This document shows, one piece after another, positions 44,496 through 63,474 of a stretch of 64,000 bases of DNA. Below the pieces are notes generated by a model. That model searched no databases and had not been told where the DNA came from. It saw nothing but the letters and a program-made list of their open reading frames with translations. Location: NCBI GenBank assembly GCA_026936335.1, contig JAPMXV010000038.1, positions 198,975-262,974 of the forward strand, written 5' to 3'. Position 1 is the first letter of the stretch, and every line of letters starts with the position of its first letter. The DNA is from Mantamonas sphyraenae STR306 (taxonomy: Eukaryota > Protista > CRuMs). The position numbers and the translations under genes are program-made.

Positions 44496-45652
44496 TTAGC
44501 GGTAGCGGCGCATCTGGACTCGCTGGCGGCGCTTCCAGTTGGCAGAGATGGAGGGACCGTTCTTGTGGAAGCGGTGACCCTTGCCACGCAGACCACGGGA
44601 CTTGACACCGGCGCTGGTAAGACCACGGGCCTCACGACGCTTATGCTTGGCAGAGACGATCCAGTTGATGCGCGGGTCGCGGCGGATAGCCTTGTGCTGG
44701 GGGTCGACAAGGATGACCTCGAACCACTTGAAGGTGGAGTCCTGGTTGACCCAGTAGGAGTTGAGGACACGCAGGTTGCCACAGGCACGGCCGATCTTCT
44801 GCTCGGCGCGCACACGCAGGGACTGGGCCTGCTTCAGGTGGTTGATACCCTGGTGCTTGGGCTTGCCATGGACAATACCACGGTGGTTGGGGCGCTTGCG
44901 ACCACCACGGCGCACGCGGATGCGGTACACCACGTAGCCCTGCTTGGCCTTGTAGCCGAGGCGGCGGGCCTTGTCCGGGCGAGTCGGGTGCTGCACGCGC
45001 GTCATGTTCTTCTCCTGGCGGTACTGCCAGGCACGCACACGCGTCAGGAATCGCAGCACATCGCTCTGCTTGCGCTTCTGCAGCTCAGCAAGATACTTGT
45101 AGGCTCCTGTGGTGGCGAAGAGTGCGTTCAGGGTCAGCATTTGTGCAGAGCTTGTTTTTTCGGCTCGCATGCGCACGAGCCACGAAACACAAAAACGCCC
45201 TGCTTCGGCTCAAGGACAGACTGCACACGGCCAACATGCATGGCTGTGGTATGTACAGTCCACCGGACGTCGCTTGAACCCATGGATGACATTGGATGAC
45301 CACATGTTTGGCCAGTGGCGGGAACGGCGTGCTGCACATGCGTGCTTCCCGCGTCCCGACCCCTCGCCATGCACCGTGGTCCTCTGCACTGTGTTGCACG
45401 TGCGCACCAGCTGCACACACGACCCACACGTCGGTTTGTGGCCGTCCGGTTTGTCGTGTGTGCTTCTACGTGCGCCCGGCGTCTGGTTTCTCCATGCACA
45501 AATTTCGCCTTTCGGCCTCGAGAGGACTTTTTCGACTGGCGACAGGATTCGGGTGCACTGCACACCACACTGTGTCGTGCGTCTCCTCTGCAGGTGGGCT
45601 TGGCCATGCGCAGCCATGCATGTGCATACGTTTCGTCTCTCAACATACCCAT
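44496..45652 (-). CDS. RPL15: 60S ribosomal protein L15 (eL15)
   Basis: [30 protein letters not shown]. First exon is ATGG (45652-45649), followed by intron 45648-45107 (GTATGT..CAG). Confidence 0.96.
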
Positions 45653-52065: not shown

Positions 52066-55000
52066 TCAGGCGACGATTTCCATGATGTCCGCAGAAGAAG
52101 AGGAGGAGGAGGAGGAGGATGCAGAGGAGGAGGAGGAGGAGGAGGAGGAGGAGGAGTCTGCGAGGAGGCGTTGCTGCTGGAGGTAGGCGAGAGTAAACCT
52201 GTTTTCGTTGCAGACCTTGGCCATTTGGTCGACGCGTCCGCGCATGGCCTTTTGCAGCTGGCGGAGGACGGAAACAAAGGCGGTGGCGTGGCTCTTGACA
52301 AAGCGGCCGTGAGAGTTGAGGAGGTGGAGGGCCCAGGTGAGGTGGAACTCGAGGTGAGGCGAGTCGTCGACGCTGTGGGCGATAAACTCGACGAGGCGCT
52401 GGACGTAGGCAGTGGGGAGGTCCTCGCAGGTTTGCTTGATGTGGTCGTGGGGAATGGCAACAAAGACAGAGTGGATGAGGTCAATGTCGTTGAGACGCAG
52501 GCTCATGAGGAGGGCCTTGAGGTAGGCCCCGTCAGCGAGGACGGCAAGGGTGGAGTCTGGGGTGATTTCGAGGTCGAGATCAAAGGGGTCGAAAACAGGG
52601 CGTCGTCGAGCGAGTAGACGAGGAGGCCCTGTGTGGAGGCGAGAGCAAAGGAGCGGCCTGTGGGGGAAAACACGGCGTCCTTGACGCGTATTTCGAGCTT
52701 GACGTTGCGTGCGCTGTGGTCGCCCTTTTTAACGCCGGGGAGGGATTCGTCGATGCGTTCGCGGACATCCCAGTGCTCGCGGTCGTCGACGTCGATGAGG
52801 TCTTTGGGGCCGGCTTCCGTGTCGTACTTGGAGTTGAGGTAGTCGAGGATGCCGTCGAGGGAGCGGTTTGCGCTGATCTGGAACTTTTTCAGGAGGATGT
52901 TTTGGGAGATCTCGTAGAGGCAGACGTACTTTGAGCGACCTGCGGCTAGGACGCATGTGCCGTCAGCGGTGTATGCGACGCGCGTGAAGCACTTTGATGC
53001 GGAGGAGGTTTTGGAGGTGACCTTGTCCGTGGAGAGGCGGCCGCCCATGATGTCCTTGCGGCCCTCGATGGTTGCGGTGAGCTTTGCGTTTTCGACGTCC
53101 CAGAAGTGGAGGTTTCCGTCGAGGGTGGAGGTGCAGAGCTGCTTGCCGTCTGGGCGGAAGGTGAGGCTGAGGATGTCGCTGGTGTGGTCGAGGGTCTCGA
53201 GGAGGCTCTTGCTCTTGAAGACGTCCCAGATGCGGACGTTGCGGTCCCAAGAGGCGGATGCGAGAGAGGTGCCCATGGGGTTGAAGGCGACAGAGACGAC
53301 GGGGCCCTCGTGTGCGGAGAGGACGTCGAGGAGCTGGCCGGTCTGCATGGACCAGACGTAGAGCTGATAGTCTGAGAAGGAGCCAGCACAGAGGACTTCG
53401 CCACTGGGATCGATGGCAAGGGAGGAGAATTGGACCGGGGACGGGGTGGTGAAGGTGCGAAAGTTGCGGTAGCGGACGAGGTCAAAGGCGCGCACGGTGC
53501 CGTCCATGGAGGCGGAGAGGACGGCGTTGCCGTTTGGATGAAAGAGGACGGTTGTGATGGGAGCGGTGTGTTCTGAAAAGGTGACGAAGCAAAAGCTGGT
53601 GGTTGTGTTCCAGATCTTGAGTTTTCCGTCGTCGCCTCCTGTGGCAATGAATTGGCCGTCGGGAGAGTAGGCGATGGAGTTCATGTCAAAATAGTGCCCC
53701 TGTTGTTTGATGACGTAGGTTTCGCTTTGCCACTCCCAGACGAGGAGCTGGCCGAGCTGAGAGCAGCCAAAGGCGAGCCAGTCGCCAGAGGCATTTATGG
53801 CGACGGTGTCGATACGGTGGTTGCTCATGGAAGAGAGAATGGACGTGTGTAAAGTCTGGCAGTTCGTAGAGAGCAAAGACGCCGTTGGAGAAGCCAGCGA
53901 CGAGGAGGCCACTGGGGCCGTGAAGGGTTGCAGAGACGGTCTTTGCGCCAGTCTGGTTGAAAAAGTGCTTGTCCTGGAGGCGCCAGGCGCCAACGAGAGG
54001 GTGGATGATGTCGTCGGGGTTGTCGAGGTCGTCGTCGGAGAGGTCGTCGTCGGAAAAGTCAGCCTCGTCGAAGCGGCGCTTTCGGGAGGCCTGGAGGCGG
54101 AGGGCGCTTCGGGAGCCTGTGAGTTTGGGAGTGCGGGAGGAAGAGGAGGAGGAGGTGGTGGTGGAGGAGGTGGTGGTGGTCGGGTGTTCGTTGCGCCAGA
54201 CAAAGAGGGCGCCGTCGCGCGAGATGGTGTACAAGATGGCCGAGTCCTTTGCGTCAAAGGCGACGGAGATGACGGCGTCACGGTGGCCAGCAAAGGTGAC
54301 GGGTTCGAAGGAGTCGACGGTGTAGAGGGAGTAGAGGCGGGCAGAGTTGTCAAGGGCGCCGGTGAGGAAGAAGAGAGAGTCTGCAGACCAGGTGATGGTG
54401 GTGACGTCGTCGTAGTGGCCCGTGTAGGTCCGGTGGAGTTCAAACGGGGAGAACTCACGAGAGCGGGGCGGGGTGCGCCACACTTGGATGTGTTTGGAGA
54501 GAGCGACGGCGAAGAATCTGGTGGGATGGGTTGGGGGGGGTGGTGGTTAGGGGGAGTTAGGGGAGAGGAGGTGGGGAGGGGGGGAGGTGGGGAGGGGGGG
54601 AATCTAGCTTTGCATACTGTCCGCAGCGGCATATCTGGCCAATCTGGGCGCCAGGACGGGCTCGAGATGGGAGGCGAGCGTTTCGCGCGGGTAATTAAGG
54701 GCAAAGCGTTTGCATGCAGAGGTGAGAAGGAATGGAGCGGGAAAGGGGGGAGGCCAATGCGTACTTTCCGTCGGGGGAGAACTTGATGTCGCCTACGGTC
54801 TGCTTGAAGTTGAAGTGATGGAGGACGACGTTGTTGGCGGCGTTGATGGCGAGGACACGGCCGTCTGAGGAGGTGGCAAAAGGGCGTGAGCAGTGAGATG
54901 GGTGCTGGGAAGGGTGGAGATGGGAGCGGGTGGGTGGAGAAAGGCGTGGGAAGGCGGAAGGGGTGGCAGCGCGGACGGCGAGGAAATTGCATTTGTGCAG

Positions 55001-55408
55001 GCGGATTTTGCAGCAGCAGGTCGGGGCGGGGTTGTGGAGGGGGGAAAGGGATGGGGAAGGGGAGGGGGGAAGGGGTGGTCGTGGATGGGGACGCGTACCT
55101 GTGTCCACAGAGAGGATCATGCTGGAGTCTGGGGACAAGGCGACGCGGTGGATGTCCTTGTCGTTCTCGACAGGGATGGTGCGTGCGGTATTTCTTTTGA
55201 GGGGATGGCAAGGGGTTAGTTTGAAGGGAGGGTAGGTGGTGGTTAAGCGGTTAAAGGGAGGATGTTGGGCGTACCGGACGAGATCGAACACGGAGAGGCG
55301 ATTGCCCACGGGGGAGTAGAGGGACTTGCCATCGGCGCTGAAGACGAGGTTGCCCTGCGAGTAGACTGTGCCAAGGAGGTTTGTGAACTGGAATGCAGTC
55401 TTGACCAT
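52066..55408 (-). CDS. PWP2: SSU processome WD40 protein Pwp2/Utp1
   Basis: FQFTNLLGTVY.QGNLVF, SPVGNR, LGQLLVWEWQSETY..KQQGH, DGTVRAFDL.RYRNFRTF. Three 5' introns; single-base indels at about 53831 and 52594. Confidence 0.95.
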
Positions 55409-56064
55409 GGGGTTGAAAAAGGGCTGGGCGGGGTGGCGGGGAGCGTGCGGAGGGAGGTGCGGAGCAGCAGGAGAGAGGACACAGGTGCTCGCGCGTAGAA
55501 CACGTGTGGGCACAGAGGAGCTGTGGGTAGCCAGTGGGATGGATTTGTGGGCAGGGCTGGTTCGGATGGGTTCAAAAGTGGATGGCGGCAATGCGCGAGA
55601 CGAGACAAACCAACCTCGATATCCGCGTGAGAGCTGGACGCACGGCCAAGCGAAAGGCGTTTTCGGACTGGTCCGGACAGCCAGCGGAACGAGGAAGGGT
55701 GTTCAAGCATGCACCCGTGTGGACACACCTGCAGGTGCATGCGTACGTGCCGGGCGGGCTACGTGTGGGCGGGAGGGTTTTTTGGCGCGCATGCGAAAAA
55801 ATCGCAAAGGCGCCCAAAAGCCCTCTTTGGCCGCGTGACGCTCGCCGGCAGGATGTGGACGGTGTTGAAGGCGCGCAAAAGCCTGCACTCCGCTGCAGCC
55901 ACACAGGCACACAGCTTGACACAGTGTTTACTGCACATGCTGGAGCTGTGGCTGCTGCGTGGAGTGGAGCGGGAGGGAAAAAAAGGCGGGAACTTTTTCA
56001 AGGCCCAGCCCTCTTTTTCAGCTTCCGCACAGGTGAGGCGTGGACTGTGGACCGTCTGTTGATG

Positions 56065-56254
56065 GTGAGTTTTTGTTTCTCACTCGGCGTGACGCGCATC
56101 GCGATGTCAAAGCGGGGCGTGTAGTCCACATGGAGGCCGATGTGAATCCGGGTTGGGAGGCCCGCTCCGTCGGTGTGGCACACGTTTTGGGCTTGGAGGG
56201 CCCTACGGCAATTTCGCGGCGCATGCTGACTCTCCTTTATGTGTTCTTCTGTAG
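56065..56254 (+). ncRNA. Intron 1 carrying the conserved structured RNA element (copy 1)
   Basis: GTGAGT donor, conserved core, CTGAC branch at 56226, pyrimidine tract, TAG. Confidence 0.65.
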
Positions 56255-56374
56255 GCATGCGGACTCAACTGGGGTCGCGATCGAGCAGCGTGGAGCGAAG
56301 CAGATGTCGACGTGTTGGACCGTCGGTCGACTCTTGTCGTTCGGCTGGAGACTGTGACGGGAGTTACACGTATG

Positions 56375-56565
56375 GTGAGTTTTTGTTTCTCACTCAGCGT
56401 GACGCGCATCGCGATGTCAAAGCGGGGCGTGTAGTCCACATGGAGGCCGATGTGAATCCGGGTTGGGAGGCCCGCTCCGTCGGTGTGGCACACGTTTTGG
56501 GCTTGGAGGGCCCTACGGCAATTTCACGGCGCATGCTGACTCTCCTCTATTTGTTCTTCTGTTAG
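56375..56565 (+). ncRNA. Intron 2 carrying the conserved structured RNA element (copy 2)
   Basis: Near-identical to copy 1; GTGAGT..CTGAC..TAG. Confidence 0.65.
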
Positions 56566-56705
56566 GCAAGGCCTGCGGACTCAACCGGGAGTCAGTCGGG
56601 AGCGAGCAACTTGAGGCGGATTTCGAAGTGCTCGGCCGTCGGCTCGTGTCGTTCGGCTGCTTCTGCTGCTTACTGGTGGAGACTGTGACGGGAGTTACAC
56701 GTATG

Positions 56706-56891
56706 GTGAGTTTTATTTCTCACTCAGCGTGACGCAAAACACGAGGTCAAAGCGGGGCGTGTAGTCCACATGGAGGCCGATGTGAATCCGGGTTGGGAGG
56801 CCCGCTCCGTCGGTGTGGCACACGTTTTGGGCAAGGAGGGCCCTACGGCAATATCGTGGCGCATGCTGACTCTCCTCTATCTCATTCTCAG
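56706..56891 (+). ncRNA. Intron 3 carrying the conserved structured RNA element (copy 3)
   Basis: Same core. The loop of the first hairpin is replaced while the TGAC/GTCA stem is kept. Confidence 0.65.
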
Positions 56892-56958
56892 ACTTGTCAG
56901 CGTATGTGTGGACGCGCGCTTTTTGGCCGCGGAGTTTGTGACGGGTCATCGGACACAG

Positions 56959-57141
56959 GTGAGTTTACACTCTCACTCAGCGTGACGCGCATCGCGATGT
57001 CAAAGCGGGGCGTGTTGTCCACATGGAGGTCGATGTGAATCCGGGTTGGGAGGCCCGCTCCGTCGGCGTGGCGCACGTTTTTGGGCAAGGAGGGCCCTAC
57101 GGCAATTTCGCGGCGCATGCTGACTCTCCATCTTTCTATAG
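56959..57141 (+). ncRNA. Intron 4 carrying the conserved structured RNA element (copy 4)
   Basis: Same core with pairing-compatible changes GTCGAT/GTCGGC. Confidence 0.65.
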
Positions 57142-57206
57142 CCAACCGCACAGTGTGTTGATGTTCTCAACAAGCACAAGAAGCACGACCAAAGCGTGCA
57201 TCGGTG

Positions 57207-57412
57207 GTGAGTTTTCTTTCTCATTCAGTCGCGTGACAAACTCGCTTGCACAGCGGGGGCGTGTTGTCCACATGGAGGCCGATGAGAATCCGGGTTGGGA
57301 GGCCCGCTCCGTCGGTGTGGCTCACGCTTGGGCAAGGAGGGCCCTTTCGGCAATTCGCGAGTGCACAATTTTGGCTGACCTCCTTTTTCTCTCCTTCTTT
57401 CTTTCTCTCCAG
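57207..57412 (+). ncRNA. Intron 5 carrying the conserved structured RNA element (copy 5, most diverged)
   Basis: Core retained, flanks diverged; GTGAGT..CTGAC..long pyrimidine tract..CAG. Confidence 0.65.
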
Positions 57413-57547
57413 GGATGAGCACGATGGGGGAGCAATTAATGAACACAATGTGCTGACGATCATTCGTTTAGTGGTTTGTGGTGGGGAGCGGCGATTGTGG
57501 TTTTTGTGTTTTTTGGCGCCAATTTGTCTGCGGAAAATCGACCGCTG

Positions 57548-57787
57548 CTATTGGCTTGGTGCTCGTTCACGTGCAGGGAGGGTCATGTGCACGGCAGATT
57601 CGTTCATGACGTTGTAGTCGTCGAGGGTCTTGTCGTCTTCCAGTTGCGTGCCGGCAAAGATGAATTGGTACGGATGAACGACGTCCGTGCTGCTCTCCAC
57701 AAGCTCCCGAAGCTCAGCGACAGTCGTGGATGACTCGACGTCGACTGTGGATGTGCCGCCGGTCTGCAGTTTGATGAAGACCTGCAT
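57548..57787 (-). CDS. Stand-alone ubiquitin-like protein without C-terminal diglycine
   Basis: MQVFIKLQTGGTSTVDVESSTTVAELR...FIFAGTQLEDDKTLDDYNV..ESAVHM. Confidence 0.8.
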   Translation of the reverse strand: MQVFIKLQTGGTSTVDVESSTTVAELRELVESSTDVVHPYQFIFAGTQLEDDKTLDDYNVMNESAVHMTLPARERAPSQ

Positions 57788-57832
57788 GGTGTGTTTGTGG
57801 GTTGCTTTGCGTGCGCTTGCGAAACAAGAACG

Positions 57833-59883
57833 ATGTTGGCAAAGGTGAGAGGGAGAGGTCGCGCATCTTGACGGAGGGAGAGGGGGAAGGGGTGGGGCTG
57901 TACATTGCGCTAACGCGTTGGTGTGCACGGAAGGAGGGAAACTTGGCGCAGCACGCAAACGCGTTTGTGGCGGCCGCTGCATGGGGCAATACGCAAACAT
58001 TGATGCAGACGCTGAATGCAGGCATAGTTGAGGTGGATGTGCGTGACGATGACGGTTTTACGGCTATGGTGAAAGCGGCGCGGGCAGGACACACAGCAAC
58101 GGTGGTTGCGCTGCTTGAGAGGGGCGCGTCGCTTGAGGCAAAGGACGCCGCTGGATGGACAGCTTTGACAAATGCGGTGCGTTTAGGGAGGGTAGAGACC
58201 GTGGCAGCGTTGCTGGAGAGAGGAGCTGAGGCAGAAGCAAGGGACAAAACCGGGATGACGCCCTTGATGCAAGCAGCGTTTTGCGGGAAGCGAGCCACAG
58301 CGGTGGCTCTGATGGACTCTGGTGTTGATGTGGATGCAAGAGATGATCACGGGAGGACTGCGTTGATGTGGGCGGCACTGCAGGGCAAGACTGAGGCTGC
58401 GCTGGCGCTGTTGGAGAGGGGTGCGTTGTTGGATGCCAAGGATCAGGCCGGGGAAACGGCGTTGGCTATGGCAGAGCGAAAATGGCATGAAGGAACAGCA
58501 AAGGCGCTGCGTGATGCAGGTGCTGGGGATGATGTGGTTGTGGAAGGGGGTGAGGAGGAGGAGGAGGTGGTGGTGAAGGAGGTGGTGAAGGAGGAGGAGG
58601 AAAAGGAGGAGGAGGAGGAGGAGGTGGTGGTGAAGGAGGAGGAGGAAGAGGAGGAGGAGGTGGAGGTGGTGGCGGTGGAGGAGGAGATCCACGATGATGA
58701 TGCCACAGGCGGTCTGGCGGATCTGATTGAGCGGAAGGATCTCCTGGTGGAGCGTAGCAGGTTTCAGGTGGAAGATACAATGCTGGGCCAGGGCGGCTTC
58801 GCCTTTGTGTACCCGGGTACCATGTATGGAACACCGGTGGCCGTCAAGATGATGAAAATGCAGCCAGCAGGCGCAGACGAGGCGTATGCACAGGATGTTG
58901 CGCACGAGGTCAACATGCTCGCTGGACTGCACCACTCCAACATACTGACGCTGCAGGGCGTATGCGTGGATCGTGGAAGCGTGTGTCTGATCACAGAGCT
59001 CTGTGAGATGGGCTCGCTCAGCAGGATGCTGCACAAACGGCCCAATGGCATCGGCGCGCTGTCGGAAGCAGCCAAGCTGGAGATTGCACGCGACGTGGCC
59101 GCTGGTATGGTGTATCTGCACGCACAGGATCCGCCAGTCATGCACAGGGACCTGAAACCGGAGAATGTGCTGCTCGATAGGAAAGGAAATGCCAAGCTCA
59201 GCGATTTTGGGCTGAGCAGGAGCAAAGAGCACACGCTGACGGCGACAAAGGGCGGCGTGGGCTCATGGCAGTATATGGCTCCCGAGTTGCTGGTTGGCGG
59301 TGTCGATGATGGGGATGAGGAGGAGGAGGAGGATGAGGATGAAGGGGAAGACGTCGTGGCCGGAACATCGTCGGTGGCAGCGGGCTCCATGGTGCAGTTT
59401 GACGAAAAAGTCGATGTATTTGCGTTTGGCATGCTGCTGTGGGAGATGATGCACGAGCGCGTGCCGTACAGCAAGAAGAAGAAGGCGTACGGTTTGAAGA
59501 GTCATATGGCAAGGTGGATGAGGCATCCGGACTCGAGGGAAAAGATCAAGAAGGAGGAGTGTCCCACATGGGCTGCCGAGCTTATTGGAGAATGCTGGGC
59601 AACAGAGGCGTCGGCCAGGCCGAGCTTTGCGGATGTGGCGGCAAGGCTGAACGACGTGGAGGTGGAGAGCGGTGGGGCAAGCAGCAGCGAGCATGTGGGG
59701 GGTAGTGGGGATGGGAAGGATGACGTCGTGGCGTTGTTGATGGAGATGAGGGAGGAGATGAAGCAGGGGCACCAGAAGCTCCAGCTGGGGCAGGTGGATG
59801 TCATGGTTGCGGTGAACGTGCAAGGAAATCGTAGCAGCGGGGACGTAGGCGTGGATGATGATAATGATGATGGTGACGTATGA
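57833..59883 (+). CDS. Ankyrin-repeat tyrosine-kinase-like (TKL) protein kinase
   Basis: About 6 ankyrin repeats (G.TAL..AA..G); GQGGFAFV, VAVK, HRDLKPEN, DFG, YMAPE. Inferred exon 1 MLAK and intron 57845-57933. Confidence 0.9.
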
Positions 59884-59914: not shown

Positions 59915-62900
59915 TCATTCGAGGCGTTGGCGTTTGGAGGAGGAGGAGGAGGAGGAATGGTCTTTGCGCTTGGGCAGGGTGAAGGAGGGGATGGGGTAGG
60001 CGTTGACGAGTGCGGTGGTGGTAGGGCGGGTGGTGATGTGGGGTGTGATGCGGTCGATGAGGGTGTGGAGGAGGGTGTGCAGTGTGGCGTCGCTGGGTTG
60101 GGGTTTGTCGAGCCAGGCGATCTTGAGGGAGAGGGAGGTGACGCCGCGGGTGATGGTGTTGCTGATCGCCTTGGATATCAGCTGGTAGGTGAGGTGTGGC
60201 CTGAGGAGGCGGACAAAGAAGGCCAGGTCGACCGGCGGTACGCCAACGTTGCCCAGCGCCAGGATGATGTGACGCACCAGGGACTGATTGCTGCCGTTGT
60301 TGATCAGCTCACGCAGTGCCTGGTGCTCGTGTGCGTGCTGATGGCGAGGGTACTTGGCTGCGCGTGCCTTCATGTGTGCCAGCAGCGTCTGGAACTCCCG
60401 CGCCGTGCAGCTGCCTCGCTCGTCGCCGGTCTTGCTCCAGCCACTGCGCACAGACTCTGGTTCCCACTTTTCCACCTTGGTTGTGGTGAGGTGATGGTCG
60501 TAGTCGCATTGTGTCCAGTGTGGGTCGCTGTCGTCGTCAGCAGGGCGTCGTGCTATCTGCAGCCACAGATGGGTCTGCTCGTGCTCCTTCCAGGTGGTGG
60601 GATGGGGCCTGTCGCCAAGAGTGTCCATCTCTGTCATGAGCAGGTGGAGGAGGGCGTAGTTGGGGTCGCCGTGGTCGTGTGGCTCCTCCAGCCAGCACAC
60701 CTTCAACCCAGCCTTTGTCACACCCGTGGCCAGACCAGCGTCATTGATGGCACTACTGCACGCATGTTGATCCATATCACGGCCGAGAAGGGCGAGGCAG
60801 AGTGCCATGTCGCCCTGGGAGAGGGGAATGTTGCCCAGTGCGAGCTGAATCTGTCGGACGAGCGTCAACAGAGTGCCATGGCAGACCACAACACGCGCCT
60901 GCAGGGTCATGATGTCGGGGATGTTGTCGATGGGATGCTCGTTGGCCAGGGTGTGCATGTGGTTCAGCAGTGCCGTGTGCTCCTTCTTGTTGCTGTGCAT
61001 GCGCTCGCTCTTGCGCCAGTGCGTCCAACCACTGCGCACAACGGCATCTGGCAGTCCATCCTCCACGGCCAGCTTCTCCTCCTCTGTGGGGTCGGGCAGA
61101 GGAAGCTCGGGGATGTCGAGGGTGTTGACGGCGGCGGTGGTGGTGGGGCGTGTGGTGATGTGGGGTGTGATGCGGTCGATGAGGGTGTGGAGGAGGGTGT
61201 GCAATGTGGCGTCGCTGGGTTTGGGGTTGTCGAGCCAGGTGATCTTGAGGGAGAGGGAGGTGACGCCACGGGTGAGGGTGTGGTTGATGGCAGGTTGCAC
61301 CTGCTTGTAGGTGAGTTGGGGCCTGAGGAGGCGGACAAAGAAGGCCAGGTCGACAGGCGCCACGCCAACGTTGCCCAGCGCCAGGATGATGTGTCGCAGC
61401 AGGGAACTCGTGCTGCCGTTGTTGATCAGCTCACGCAGTGCCTGGTGCTCGTTTGCGTGCTGATGGCGAGGGTACTTGGCTGCGCGTGCCTTCATGTGTG
61501 CCAGCAGCGTCTGGAACTCCAGCGCCGTGCAGCTGCCACGCTCGTCGCTGGGACCATTGCTCCAGCCACTGCGCACAGACTCTGGTTCCCACTTTTCCAC
61601 CTTGGTTGTGGTGAGGTGGTGGTCGTAGTCGCATTGTGTCCAGTGTGGGTCGCTGTCGTTGTCAGCAGGGCGTCGTGCCTCCTGCAGCCACAGCTGGGTC
61701 TGCTTGTGCTCCTCCCAGGTGGTGGGATGGGCTGTGTCGCCAAGAGTGTCCATCTCTGTCATGAGCAGGTGGAGGAGGGCGTAGTTGGGGTCGTCGTGGT
61801 CGTGTGGCTCCTCCAGCCAGCACACCTTCAACCCAGCCTTTGTCACACCCATGGCCAGACCAGCGTTCTGGACGGCATGGCCACACGCGTGTTGATCCAT
61901 GTCACGGCCGAGAAGGGTGAGGCAGAGGGCCATGTCCCCCTGGGAGAGAGGAATGTTGCCAAGAGCGAGCAGGATATGTCGGACGAGCGTGTTCAGTGTG
62001 CCATGGCAGACCACGACACGTGCCTGCAGGGTCATGAGGTCGGGGATGTTGTCGATGGGATGCTCGTTGGCCAGAGTGTGCATGTGCTTCAGCAGTGCCG
62101 TGTGCTCCTTCTTGTTGCCGTGGCTGCGGTCGTCACTGTACCCCCATGTCCACCCTTTGCGCACAACACCATCTGGCAACTTATTCGTCTTGTTCACGCT
62201 TGCTTTCTTCCCAGCGCCGGTGTCTCCGTTCTTGGCCCTCCTTGCCCGTGTGCTCGACGTTCCTGTCTCTGTGCCACTGCCAGCCGTGACCCTGTGCCTG
62301 CGCTGTCCGCTGCCTTTCATCGAGTGTGAACCAGTATGACGGCTAATGTAGCCTCTGCGTCGTCTGTGGCCTCTACTTGTGCGTCTCGGCTGCCATTCAT
62401 CCGTGTCCCCCTGCTCCGTGTCGTCCGCGTCGTCGTCGCTGTCGTCTTGCGGCATGTACTCCTCATCCATGGCATCACCAGTATCTGCAATGAAGAGTGG
62501 GCCCTGAGTTTCCACCTCGTCGTCCACGTGCTGCTGGGTTGCGTCGTCTGCCTCGCCGTCTTCTTCGTACGCCTCCATCCCTGAGCTGGTCATCCCCTCT
62601 GAGTTGCTGGACAAGGACCGTGGTTCACGGTGGCCAAAGTTCAGGAAAATGAGGTCCTCCACGTCGACAGTGTCATGTGTGGGTGTGTCCTGGTCTGCGT
62701 CGTCGTCGTCGCTGTCTCCAGTCTGCCGTGTGGCCTGGTGGGAGGAGGACGACGATGTGGTGGTGGATGTGGTCCGTGTGATGCCGACAAAAGCAGGGCT
62801 GATGCGTTTGGGGACGCGGTTGTGGTTGATGGTGGGTTGAGCAGGCGGAGGGTGCGACGGAGGCTGAGCGAAGTGCATCTGGGCAGTTTGTCGCGGCTGA

Positions 62901-63474
62901 GGAGGCGGCGGAGGAGGGTAGGGGTAGTATGGATGGCCCTGATGAGGGTATGCGTGGTACAGCTGGGAGTGGGTGTTGACGGGGACCCATATGATGGGTG
63001 GTTGTGGGTGCTGGTACGGGTTTTGAACGCCAGAGACGGGCATCATGTTCGGAAACGGCTGGGCAGCCATGGGAGGGACCATGTAACCGTAGCTGTGGGA
63101 AGCCGGGGAGGGGCATGGTGGGGCAGGAATGGTGAGCGGAAGGCGGAATGGACGCCGTCAGCGCAGAAGCGGGGACAAGGTAGGCTGGAACGAGCAAAGA
63201 GGGGAAAACGGAGGAGATTGGCAGACCGGGAAACTGGCAACAGGGAGGGCAGTGACAGGGGGGAGGGGATCGGACAAGAGCGGAGAACGCAGCAGCGGTG
63301 ATGATGGGGAAGTGGAGATGCAGGGGAGGAGTGCAGGGAAGCGACGGAGGCATGGAGGAGGCAAGGAGGCGGGAGAAGCGGGCAGTCAGAAAACGGAGTG
63401 GAAGGCAGAACGCACGCTGGGTAGGTGTTGGGTGTGTGTTGTTGCTTCGGAGTGCTTGAGTAGTCTTTGTCCAT
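59915..63474 (-). CDS. Telomere-adjacent protein with four repeated ~140-aa domains (A-B-A-B), putative nuclear protein
   Basis: 1055-aa ORF plus an inferred first exon (63474-63416) joined in frame by intron 63415-63093. Pro-rich and acidic N-terminus; bipartite NLS-like end KRK..KRQR. Confidence 0.8.
60010..62179 (-). repeat. Direct tandem duplication of about 1125 nt within the terminal gene
   Basis: Units start at 62179 (LPDGVVRKGW) and 61054 (LPDAVVRSGW); long identical DNA stretches. Confidence 0.92.

Follow-up and report, generated by a model that had tools for sequence, protein, structure and literature searches.

Five tandem intron units in one gene of Mantamonas sphyraenae share an RNA family that fits no described class and that resides in a known kind of host gene. 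The host locus is transcribed, and introns 1-4 are removed by the major spliceosome. The explanation we favor, tentatively and with a little less than even confidence, is a new intron-encoded RNA from a host of the snoRNA type that may be kept as a debranching-resistant lariat or circle of about 165 nt.

The intron units and their host gene

All positions refer to the window, i.e., the whole 64,000-nt stretch of DNA that was analyzed, and all five units lie on its (+) strand. Intron 1 spans 56065-56254 (190 nt), with the predicted branch A at 56229, a stretch complementary to the lariat junction (the splint, discussed below) at 56079-56091, and a conserved core at 56111-56212. Intron 2 is found at 56375-56565 (191 nt; predicted branch A 56539, splint 56389-56401, core 56421-56522), intron 3 at 56706-56891 (186 nt; predicted branch A 56869, splint 56719-56731, core 56751-56852), and intron 4 at 56959-57141 (183 nt; predicted branch A 57123, splint 56972-56984, core 57004-57106). 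Unit 5, the most diverged of the five copies, spans 57207-57412 (206 nt; predicted branch A 57378, splint 57220-57231, core 57252-57354). Each unit begins with GTGAGT, contains one GCTGAC, and ends in a pyrimidine tract followed by YAG. The original prediction had described five intron units of 183-206 nt marked by GTGAGT, CTGAC and YAG, and all of them are present where it placed them. CTCC occurs 2-3 nt after the branch A in all five copies (56230-56236 in copy 1), though the tails otherwise diverge, and unit 5 has the longest distance from branch to acceptor, 34 nt.

The core of about 102 nt is 92-100% identical between copies, whereas the intron flanks are 67-98% identical and pairs of exons only 48-63%, with the exception of exons 2 and 3 (81%). 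Copy 5 departs from the other copies less in its core than across the flanking intron sequence (Fisher p 4e-4 to 1.4e-3), and introns 1 and 2 differ less from each other than do the neighboring paralogous exons 2 and 3 (p 6e-5). These figures bear out the earlier claim that the introns are conserved over the exons. At the sequence level, the core is more conserved than both flanks and exons, and the family is apparently under selection; the core has been kept either by selection or by biased homogenization. The gradient of conservation from intron core to flank to exon, together with the paralogy of exons 2 and 3, shows that the array arose through tandem duplication of units consisting of an intron plus an exon.

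The RNA data are the assembled contigs of one run, X4. This run is publicly labeled as DNA and is evidently RNA-seq of M. sphyraenae, because its contigs lack two PWP2 introns and show exact GT..AG skips in the host gene. The contigs omit exactly 190, 191, 186, and 183 nt at the predicted GT..AG sites, i.e., introns 1-4 are spliced; a minor unspliced contig is present for intron 2. Four of the five splice junctions in the original prediction are thus seen in X4, but the fifth is not: the contigs pass unspliced from exon 5 into unit 5 and stop at 57413, one base past the 3' splice site. The missing joint may reflect retention of intron 5, or a last exon too short for assembly. Contig depth at the joints of introns 1-4 is 283-805 versus 70 at PWP2, depth being a poor measure of expression. 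No splice joints are found in runs X1-X3, and the four runs do not constitute independent support because all come from one study, probably the source study.

The host gene is arranged head-to-head with PWP2/UTP1, as had been noted from the sequence. PWP2 lies on the (-) strand at 52503-55408 (lower bound approximate), its homologs are named periodic tryptophan protein 2 or U3 snoRNP protein, and the two genes probably share a bidirectional promoter. Host exon 1 is placed at 55610-56064 on the (+) strand (start approximate), following the X4 contig coverage of about 55610-56064; no X4 contig covers 55500-55609. This exon is single copy in the genome and is predicted to fold better than shuffles (z -5.9), with several long hairpins. 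It includes a 117-aa ORF (55709-56062) that has no protein homologs at E<=1. Exon 1 also carries GCGTGACGC, the word that follows the splint in introns 1-4.

The remaining exons on the (+) strand look like non-coding spacers: exon 2 (56255-56374, 120 nt), which is paralogous to exon 3 (56566-56705, 140 nt), exon 4 (56892-56958, 67 nt), and exon 5 (57142-57206, 65 nt). The reading frame is not kept between exons 2 and 3, because their alignment contains indels of 5, 5, 5, 4, and 19 nt. The longest Met ORF across the internal exons has 114 aa; in exon 2 the read contigs carry an A>G change at 56257, which removes its ATG, and an added T at 56314, which shifts its frame. Coding potential was assessed exon by exon, and none of the resulting peptides has a Pfam match. 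In agreement with its initial description as seemingly non-coding, the host gene looks non-coding and lacks a credible reading frame: it yields a spliced transcript without a conserved ORF, and its introns are more conserved than its exons.

The array lies between PWP2 (-) and a small ubiquitin-like ORF at 57548-57790 (-) (PF00240, E 6e-16), which is convergent on the host gene and falls outside the RNA contig coverage. Farther along the window are a gene encoding ankyrin repeats and a protein kinase with an acidic linker (57982-59883), and a 1055-aa ORF on the (-) strand (59915-63082) in which a long internal stretch is duplicated and no domain matches Pfam at E<=0.01. The first intron of RPL15 (45107-45648 (-), about 540 nt) includes a structured stretch at 45401-45520 (z about -4.9) without an Rfam match.

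Comparison with described RNA classes and search for homologs

Rfam searches of the region, the whole window, and the single introns returned only noise at E<=10, and a scan for the boxes of snoRNAs and snRNAs came up empty, which upholds the original prediction on both counts. Even when one mismatch is allowed, the 5' parts of the copies have no C box (RUGAUGA). The sole near-match to a C box overlaps the branch site, and the one CUGA (D-box motif) in each copy coincides with the branch-site motif, in a part with predicted pairing. An H box (ANANNA) is not common to the copies; it occurs in copy 3 only, in a variable part, and the motif that the copies share is ANAGCG. A terminal ACA box is absent, the only shared ACA sits inside the long arm of the predicted fold, and the 3' motif is CGGCAAU. 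An Sm site (RAU3-6GR) is found in copy 5 only, in a variable insertion.

The copies contain neither a hammerhead core nor a telomere template, ARAGORN reports nothing, and riboswitch and small ribozyme families give no Rfam matches. Likewise, models for SRP RNA and RNase P RNA have no matches at the locus. Their canonical genes are on other contigs: the nuclear RNase P RNA gene (L009, G000:C45:403577-403951) scores 41 bits and the SRP RNA gene (L010, G000:C25:256103-256396) 96 bits. Likenesses to cobalamin, FMN, SAM, and c-di-AMP riboswitches, the HDV ribozyme, 5S rRNA, the SRP Alu domain, MRP P4, and U11 were rejected; the order of elements or the key residues do not fit, and Rfam assigns no score.

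Complementarity to the organism's own rRNA, for which the original prediction had suggested a search, found no support: the best antisense match to mature rRNA was equaled in 146 of 200 shuffles. A 12-bp match to 18S rRNA (L008 2760-2771) is at chance level and self-paired, and was discarded. No complementarity over 10 bp exists to U6atac, SRP RNA, or RNase P RNA, and no invariant block of the introns forms at least 7 Watson-Crick pairs with the U6atac of the genome.

The minor spliceosome seems to have been kept in Mantamonas. A credible U6atac gene (L258 1501-1601 (-), G000:C58:259739-259839) has the AAAGGAGAGA box, AGC, the ISL, and a U-tail; its score of 29.7 bits (E 1e-4) is just under the Rfam cut-off. 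The U11 model has no matches in the genome at E<=1. Since U6atac was found in the genome and U11 was not found at any other locus, we considered a diverged U11 as the identity of the intron RNA. The likeness lies in the GUGGCACACG word followed by a GGGC hairpin. However, unlike U11, the introns have no AAGGG 5' splice-site-binding end (its 5' recognition sequence), no third stem-loop, no shared Sm site, and no Rfam score.

The genome searched for further copies comprised 25,061,354 bases in 78 contigs, corresponding to the assembly described for M. sphyraenae, a protist of the CRuMs (25.06 Mb, 78 contigs; PMC10492846). Both BLAST and a covariance model built from the copies recovered the same five tandem copies and no sixth, and a dispersed introner is excluded because only five copies exist in the genome. 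Pattern scans of two metagenome collections, three viral collections, and one collection of prokaryote genomes found no exact core, and blastn against phages returned nothing either. Among loci from these collections that matched a loose pattern, the best covariance model E-value was 0.79; the model search and all comparisons excluded one human-gut metagenome locus (L228) as a precaution. The blank in the collections is weak evidence because relatives of Mantamonas are probably poorly represented there. Synteny based on PWP2 gave no comparison locus either, as the nearest relative is a transcriptome protein (76% identity) without a contig. The RNA family is known from one species, in which it has five paralogs. 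Since homologs were not found in the collections searched, it may be a one-species family rather than a class.

Predicted fold and the helix across the lariat junction

Taken by itself, a core of about 130 nt is predicted to be no more stable than its shuffles (z about 0). The whole loop from the 5' splice site to the branch, folded as a circle, is more stable than shuffles (z -1.7 to -3.6); its length is 164-165 nt in copies 1-4 and 172 nt in copy 5. In the consensus fold the first five intron bases pair with nucleotides 14-19, the bases that follow these pair with the branch site, and the two helices abut. A bulged closing stem is predicted to continue from this junction helix and to end in a three-way junction, from which a 75-nt arm and a 15-nt hairpin extend. 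In copy 1, the long arm (56114-56188, (+)) would consist of four helices, interrupted by a 6-nt AUGGAG bulge and an internal loop and capped by a GGGA apical loop. The short arm (56189-56203, (+)) would have a GGGC/GCCC stem and an NNGGAGG loop, and is followed by the invariant CGGCAAU. The CTCC after the branch is complementary to the three GGAG(G) elements; in copy 5, its match to the short-arm loop extends to 7 bp. The alternative GGAG/CUCC pairing has a predicted probability of about 0.

According to the original prediction, changes between the copies preserve pairing. This holds for the helices it named, in that long-arm pairs are kept despite one-sided changes in copies 4 and 5, but not for the proposed GNRA hairpin formed by GTGA or GAGA, which has a predicted probability of about 0. 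In the closing stem, copy 3 shows a two-sided compensatory change from G-C to A-U, and copy 5 has a stem rebuilt in sequence, with a CUCGC/GCGAG helix; one closing-stem pair is broken in each of copies 2 and 3. Counted by hand, pairing is kept in about 7 of 9 stem substitutions (p 0.008-0.025), the structure having been derived from the same five sequences that were used to assess covariation. When 50 nt of exon are attached, the branch helix is not favored in the predicted fold. This would fit a helix that forms after excision, but it also means that the model depends on context.

The lariat junction, i.e., CAUGCUGA joined to GUGAG, has its reverse complement at nucleotides 14-27 of the intron (CUCACUCAGCGUG in copies 2-4); the branch point is predicted from the GCTGAC motif as an A in all five copies. 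The junction helix reaches 13 bp in every copy except copy 5, where it has 12 bp. Of 5000 shuffles of the intron interior, 0-1 gave an equivalent splint for copies 1-4, and 25 did so for copy 5; because the five copies are paralogs, the splint counts as one event. All three substitutions between copies within the splint give G.U pairs, and a read allele at 56728 likewise yields a G.U pair. Motif-predicted introns with other branch sites, taken from 134 kb of the genome and forming a small set of partly false introns, have best splints of 8-10 bp, those of 10 bp including 3-5 G.U pairs. Genome-wide, the GTGAG-type splint pattern is at background (25 matches versus 22 for the control). The junction helix is the most distinctive feature of the RNA and is absent from the original prediction; as modeled, it argues for a product in lariat or circular form, not for a trimmed linear snoRNA-like RNA. 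We did not find a duplex across the branch that blocks DBR1, or a junction clamp of this kind, described in the literature.

Fate of the excised introns and related systems

Under the explanation we favor, the non-coding host gene, probably sharing its bidirectional promoter with PWP2, would exist to make its introns. In the excised intron, nucleotides 14-27 would pair both with the 7-8 nt that end at the branch A and with the first 5 nt of the intron, so that one helix of 12-13 bp would span the 2'-5' bond and close the bulged stem with its three-way junction. Covering this bond, the clamp would hinder DBR1 as well as nucleases that attack ends, and a lariat or circle of about 165 nt would therefore be expected to accumulate. 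Through tandem duplication of intron plus exon, each transcript would yield five such molecules. A protein-binding scaffold, rather than an antisense guide, is the most likely role of the conserved arms with their three GGAG(G) elements and CGGCAAU. We infer that the intron product is stable and has a function; a role in ribosome biogenesis would be a guess drawn solely from the PWP2 neighborhood. Several points count against a lariat product: the contigs of the one RNA run show no lariat, circle, or small RNA, known stable lariats are mostly C-branched (PMC6112733), whereas an A is predicted here, and homologs outside this genome were not found. We consider it doubtful that the family represents a new functional RNA class that exists only as a spliceosome-made lariat of about 165 nt with an antisense clamp, made five per transcript and acting as an RNP scaffold.

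A rather unlikely alternative is that the introns are debranched normally and trimmed to a linear RNA of about 130-150 nt closed by the terminal stem, an atypical orphan snoRNA whose helices aid processing or folding. This would be in keeping with the snoRNA host-gene architecture, the head-to-head arrangement with PWP2, the A-type branch point, and the presence of DBR1 in the genome. The closing stem forms equally well in a linear intron, and an A-N-A triplet before the long arm varies between AAA, ACA, and AUA in the manner of H and ACA boxes. However, no ANANNA or Sm site is common to the copies, which also lack a terminal ACA, a 5' C box, and an Rfam match, and their antisense potential toward rRNA does not exceed chance. 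A linear product also leaves unexplained the exact register in which the two helices meet at the lariat junction. The duplication itself could instead have occurred without any RNA function, through recent tandem copying of an intron plus exon, or from an introner-like or MITE-derived intron, followed by homogenization through gene conversion. Exons 2 and 3 are paralogous, so duplication did occur, and read variants at 57016 and 57030 turn one copy into the state of another; the core alone is not unusually stable, and homologs were not found. This explanation is improbable, given that conservation peaks in the core and is lower in the adjacent flanks and exons (p 1e-3 to 6e-5), that changes in the closing stem are compensatory, and that just five copies exist at an expressed and spliced locus, unlike the dispersed copies of introners.

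The least probable explanation places the function in cis: the structure would hide the 5' splice site and the branch point, so that a protein or ligand could determine whether introns of the host, itself a highly structured lncRNA, are removed or retained. The product would then be the host transcript, either spliced or still holding intron 5. Both splice signals are sequestered in the predicted fold, X4 shows apparent retention of intron 5 and partial retention of intron 2, exon 1 is strongly structured, and the GGAG/CUCC pairing exists on paper. On the other hand, the alternative fold has next to no predicted probability and riboswitch families are unmatched. The internal exons are diverged and polymorphic, introns 1-4 are spliced, and further non-coding stretches in the window are likewise structured.

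Were the lariat explanation true, a lineage close to the root of the eukaryotes would have a non-coding gene dedicated to making a lariat as a selected end product. A working clamp would constitute a simple, sequence-encoded block to the debranching of an ordinary A-branched lariat. The question of how some lariats escape DBR1 would then become directly testable with a 13-nt mutation, and lariats more generally might be selected end products with genes of their own. The splint rule, i.e., an intron-internal reverse complement of the branch site plus the 5' splice site, can be scanned for in any eukaryotic genome.

Although the RNA has none of the boxes that characterize the known intron-encoded classes, it is found in a gene architecture that is used for essential small RNAs. 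Some snoRNAs, such as U17/snR30 and U14, are repeated in several introns of one host. Like snoRNA host genes, the gene described here has short, disposable exons and a conserved cargo in its introns, each of which carries one RNA, with several copies per transcript and a ribosome-biogenesis gene as neighbor. It differs in that the introns have neither C/D nor H/ACA boxes nor rRNA antisense elements, and in that the conserved structure takes in the 5' splice site and the branch point. Introners are structured, self-similar spliceosomal introns dispersed over many unrelated genes. The Mantamonas introns share with them near-identical sequences and ends brought together by base pairing, but form five tandem copies with duplicated exons and a conservation gradient that peaks in the core. 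A further comparison is with the stable lariat RNAs known as ciRNAs or circular sisRNAs and slb-snoRNAs, which are mostly stabilized by a C branch point or by short GU-rich and C-rich motifs and derive mainly from protein-coding hosts (PMC6112733, PMC8609340, PMC7565381). As in these systems, a short spliced intron (introns 1-4) is suggested to survive as a 2'-5' lariat or circle. In contrast to them, the predicted branch is a canonical A rather than a C, the proposed protection is a self-complementary junction helix, and the host gene is seemingly dedicated to its introns.
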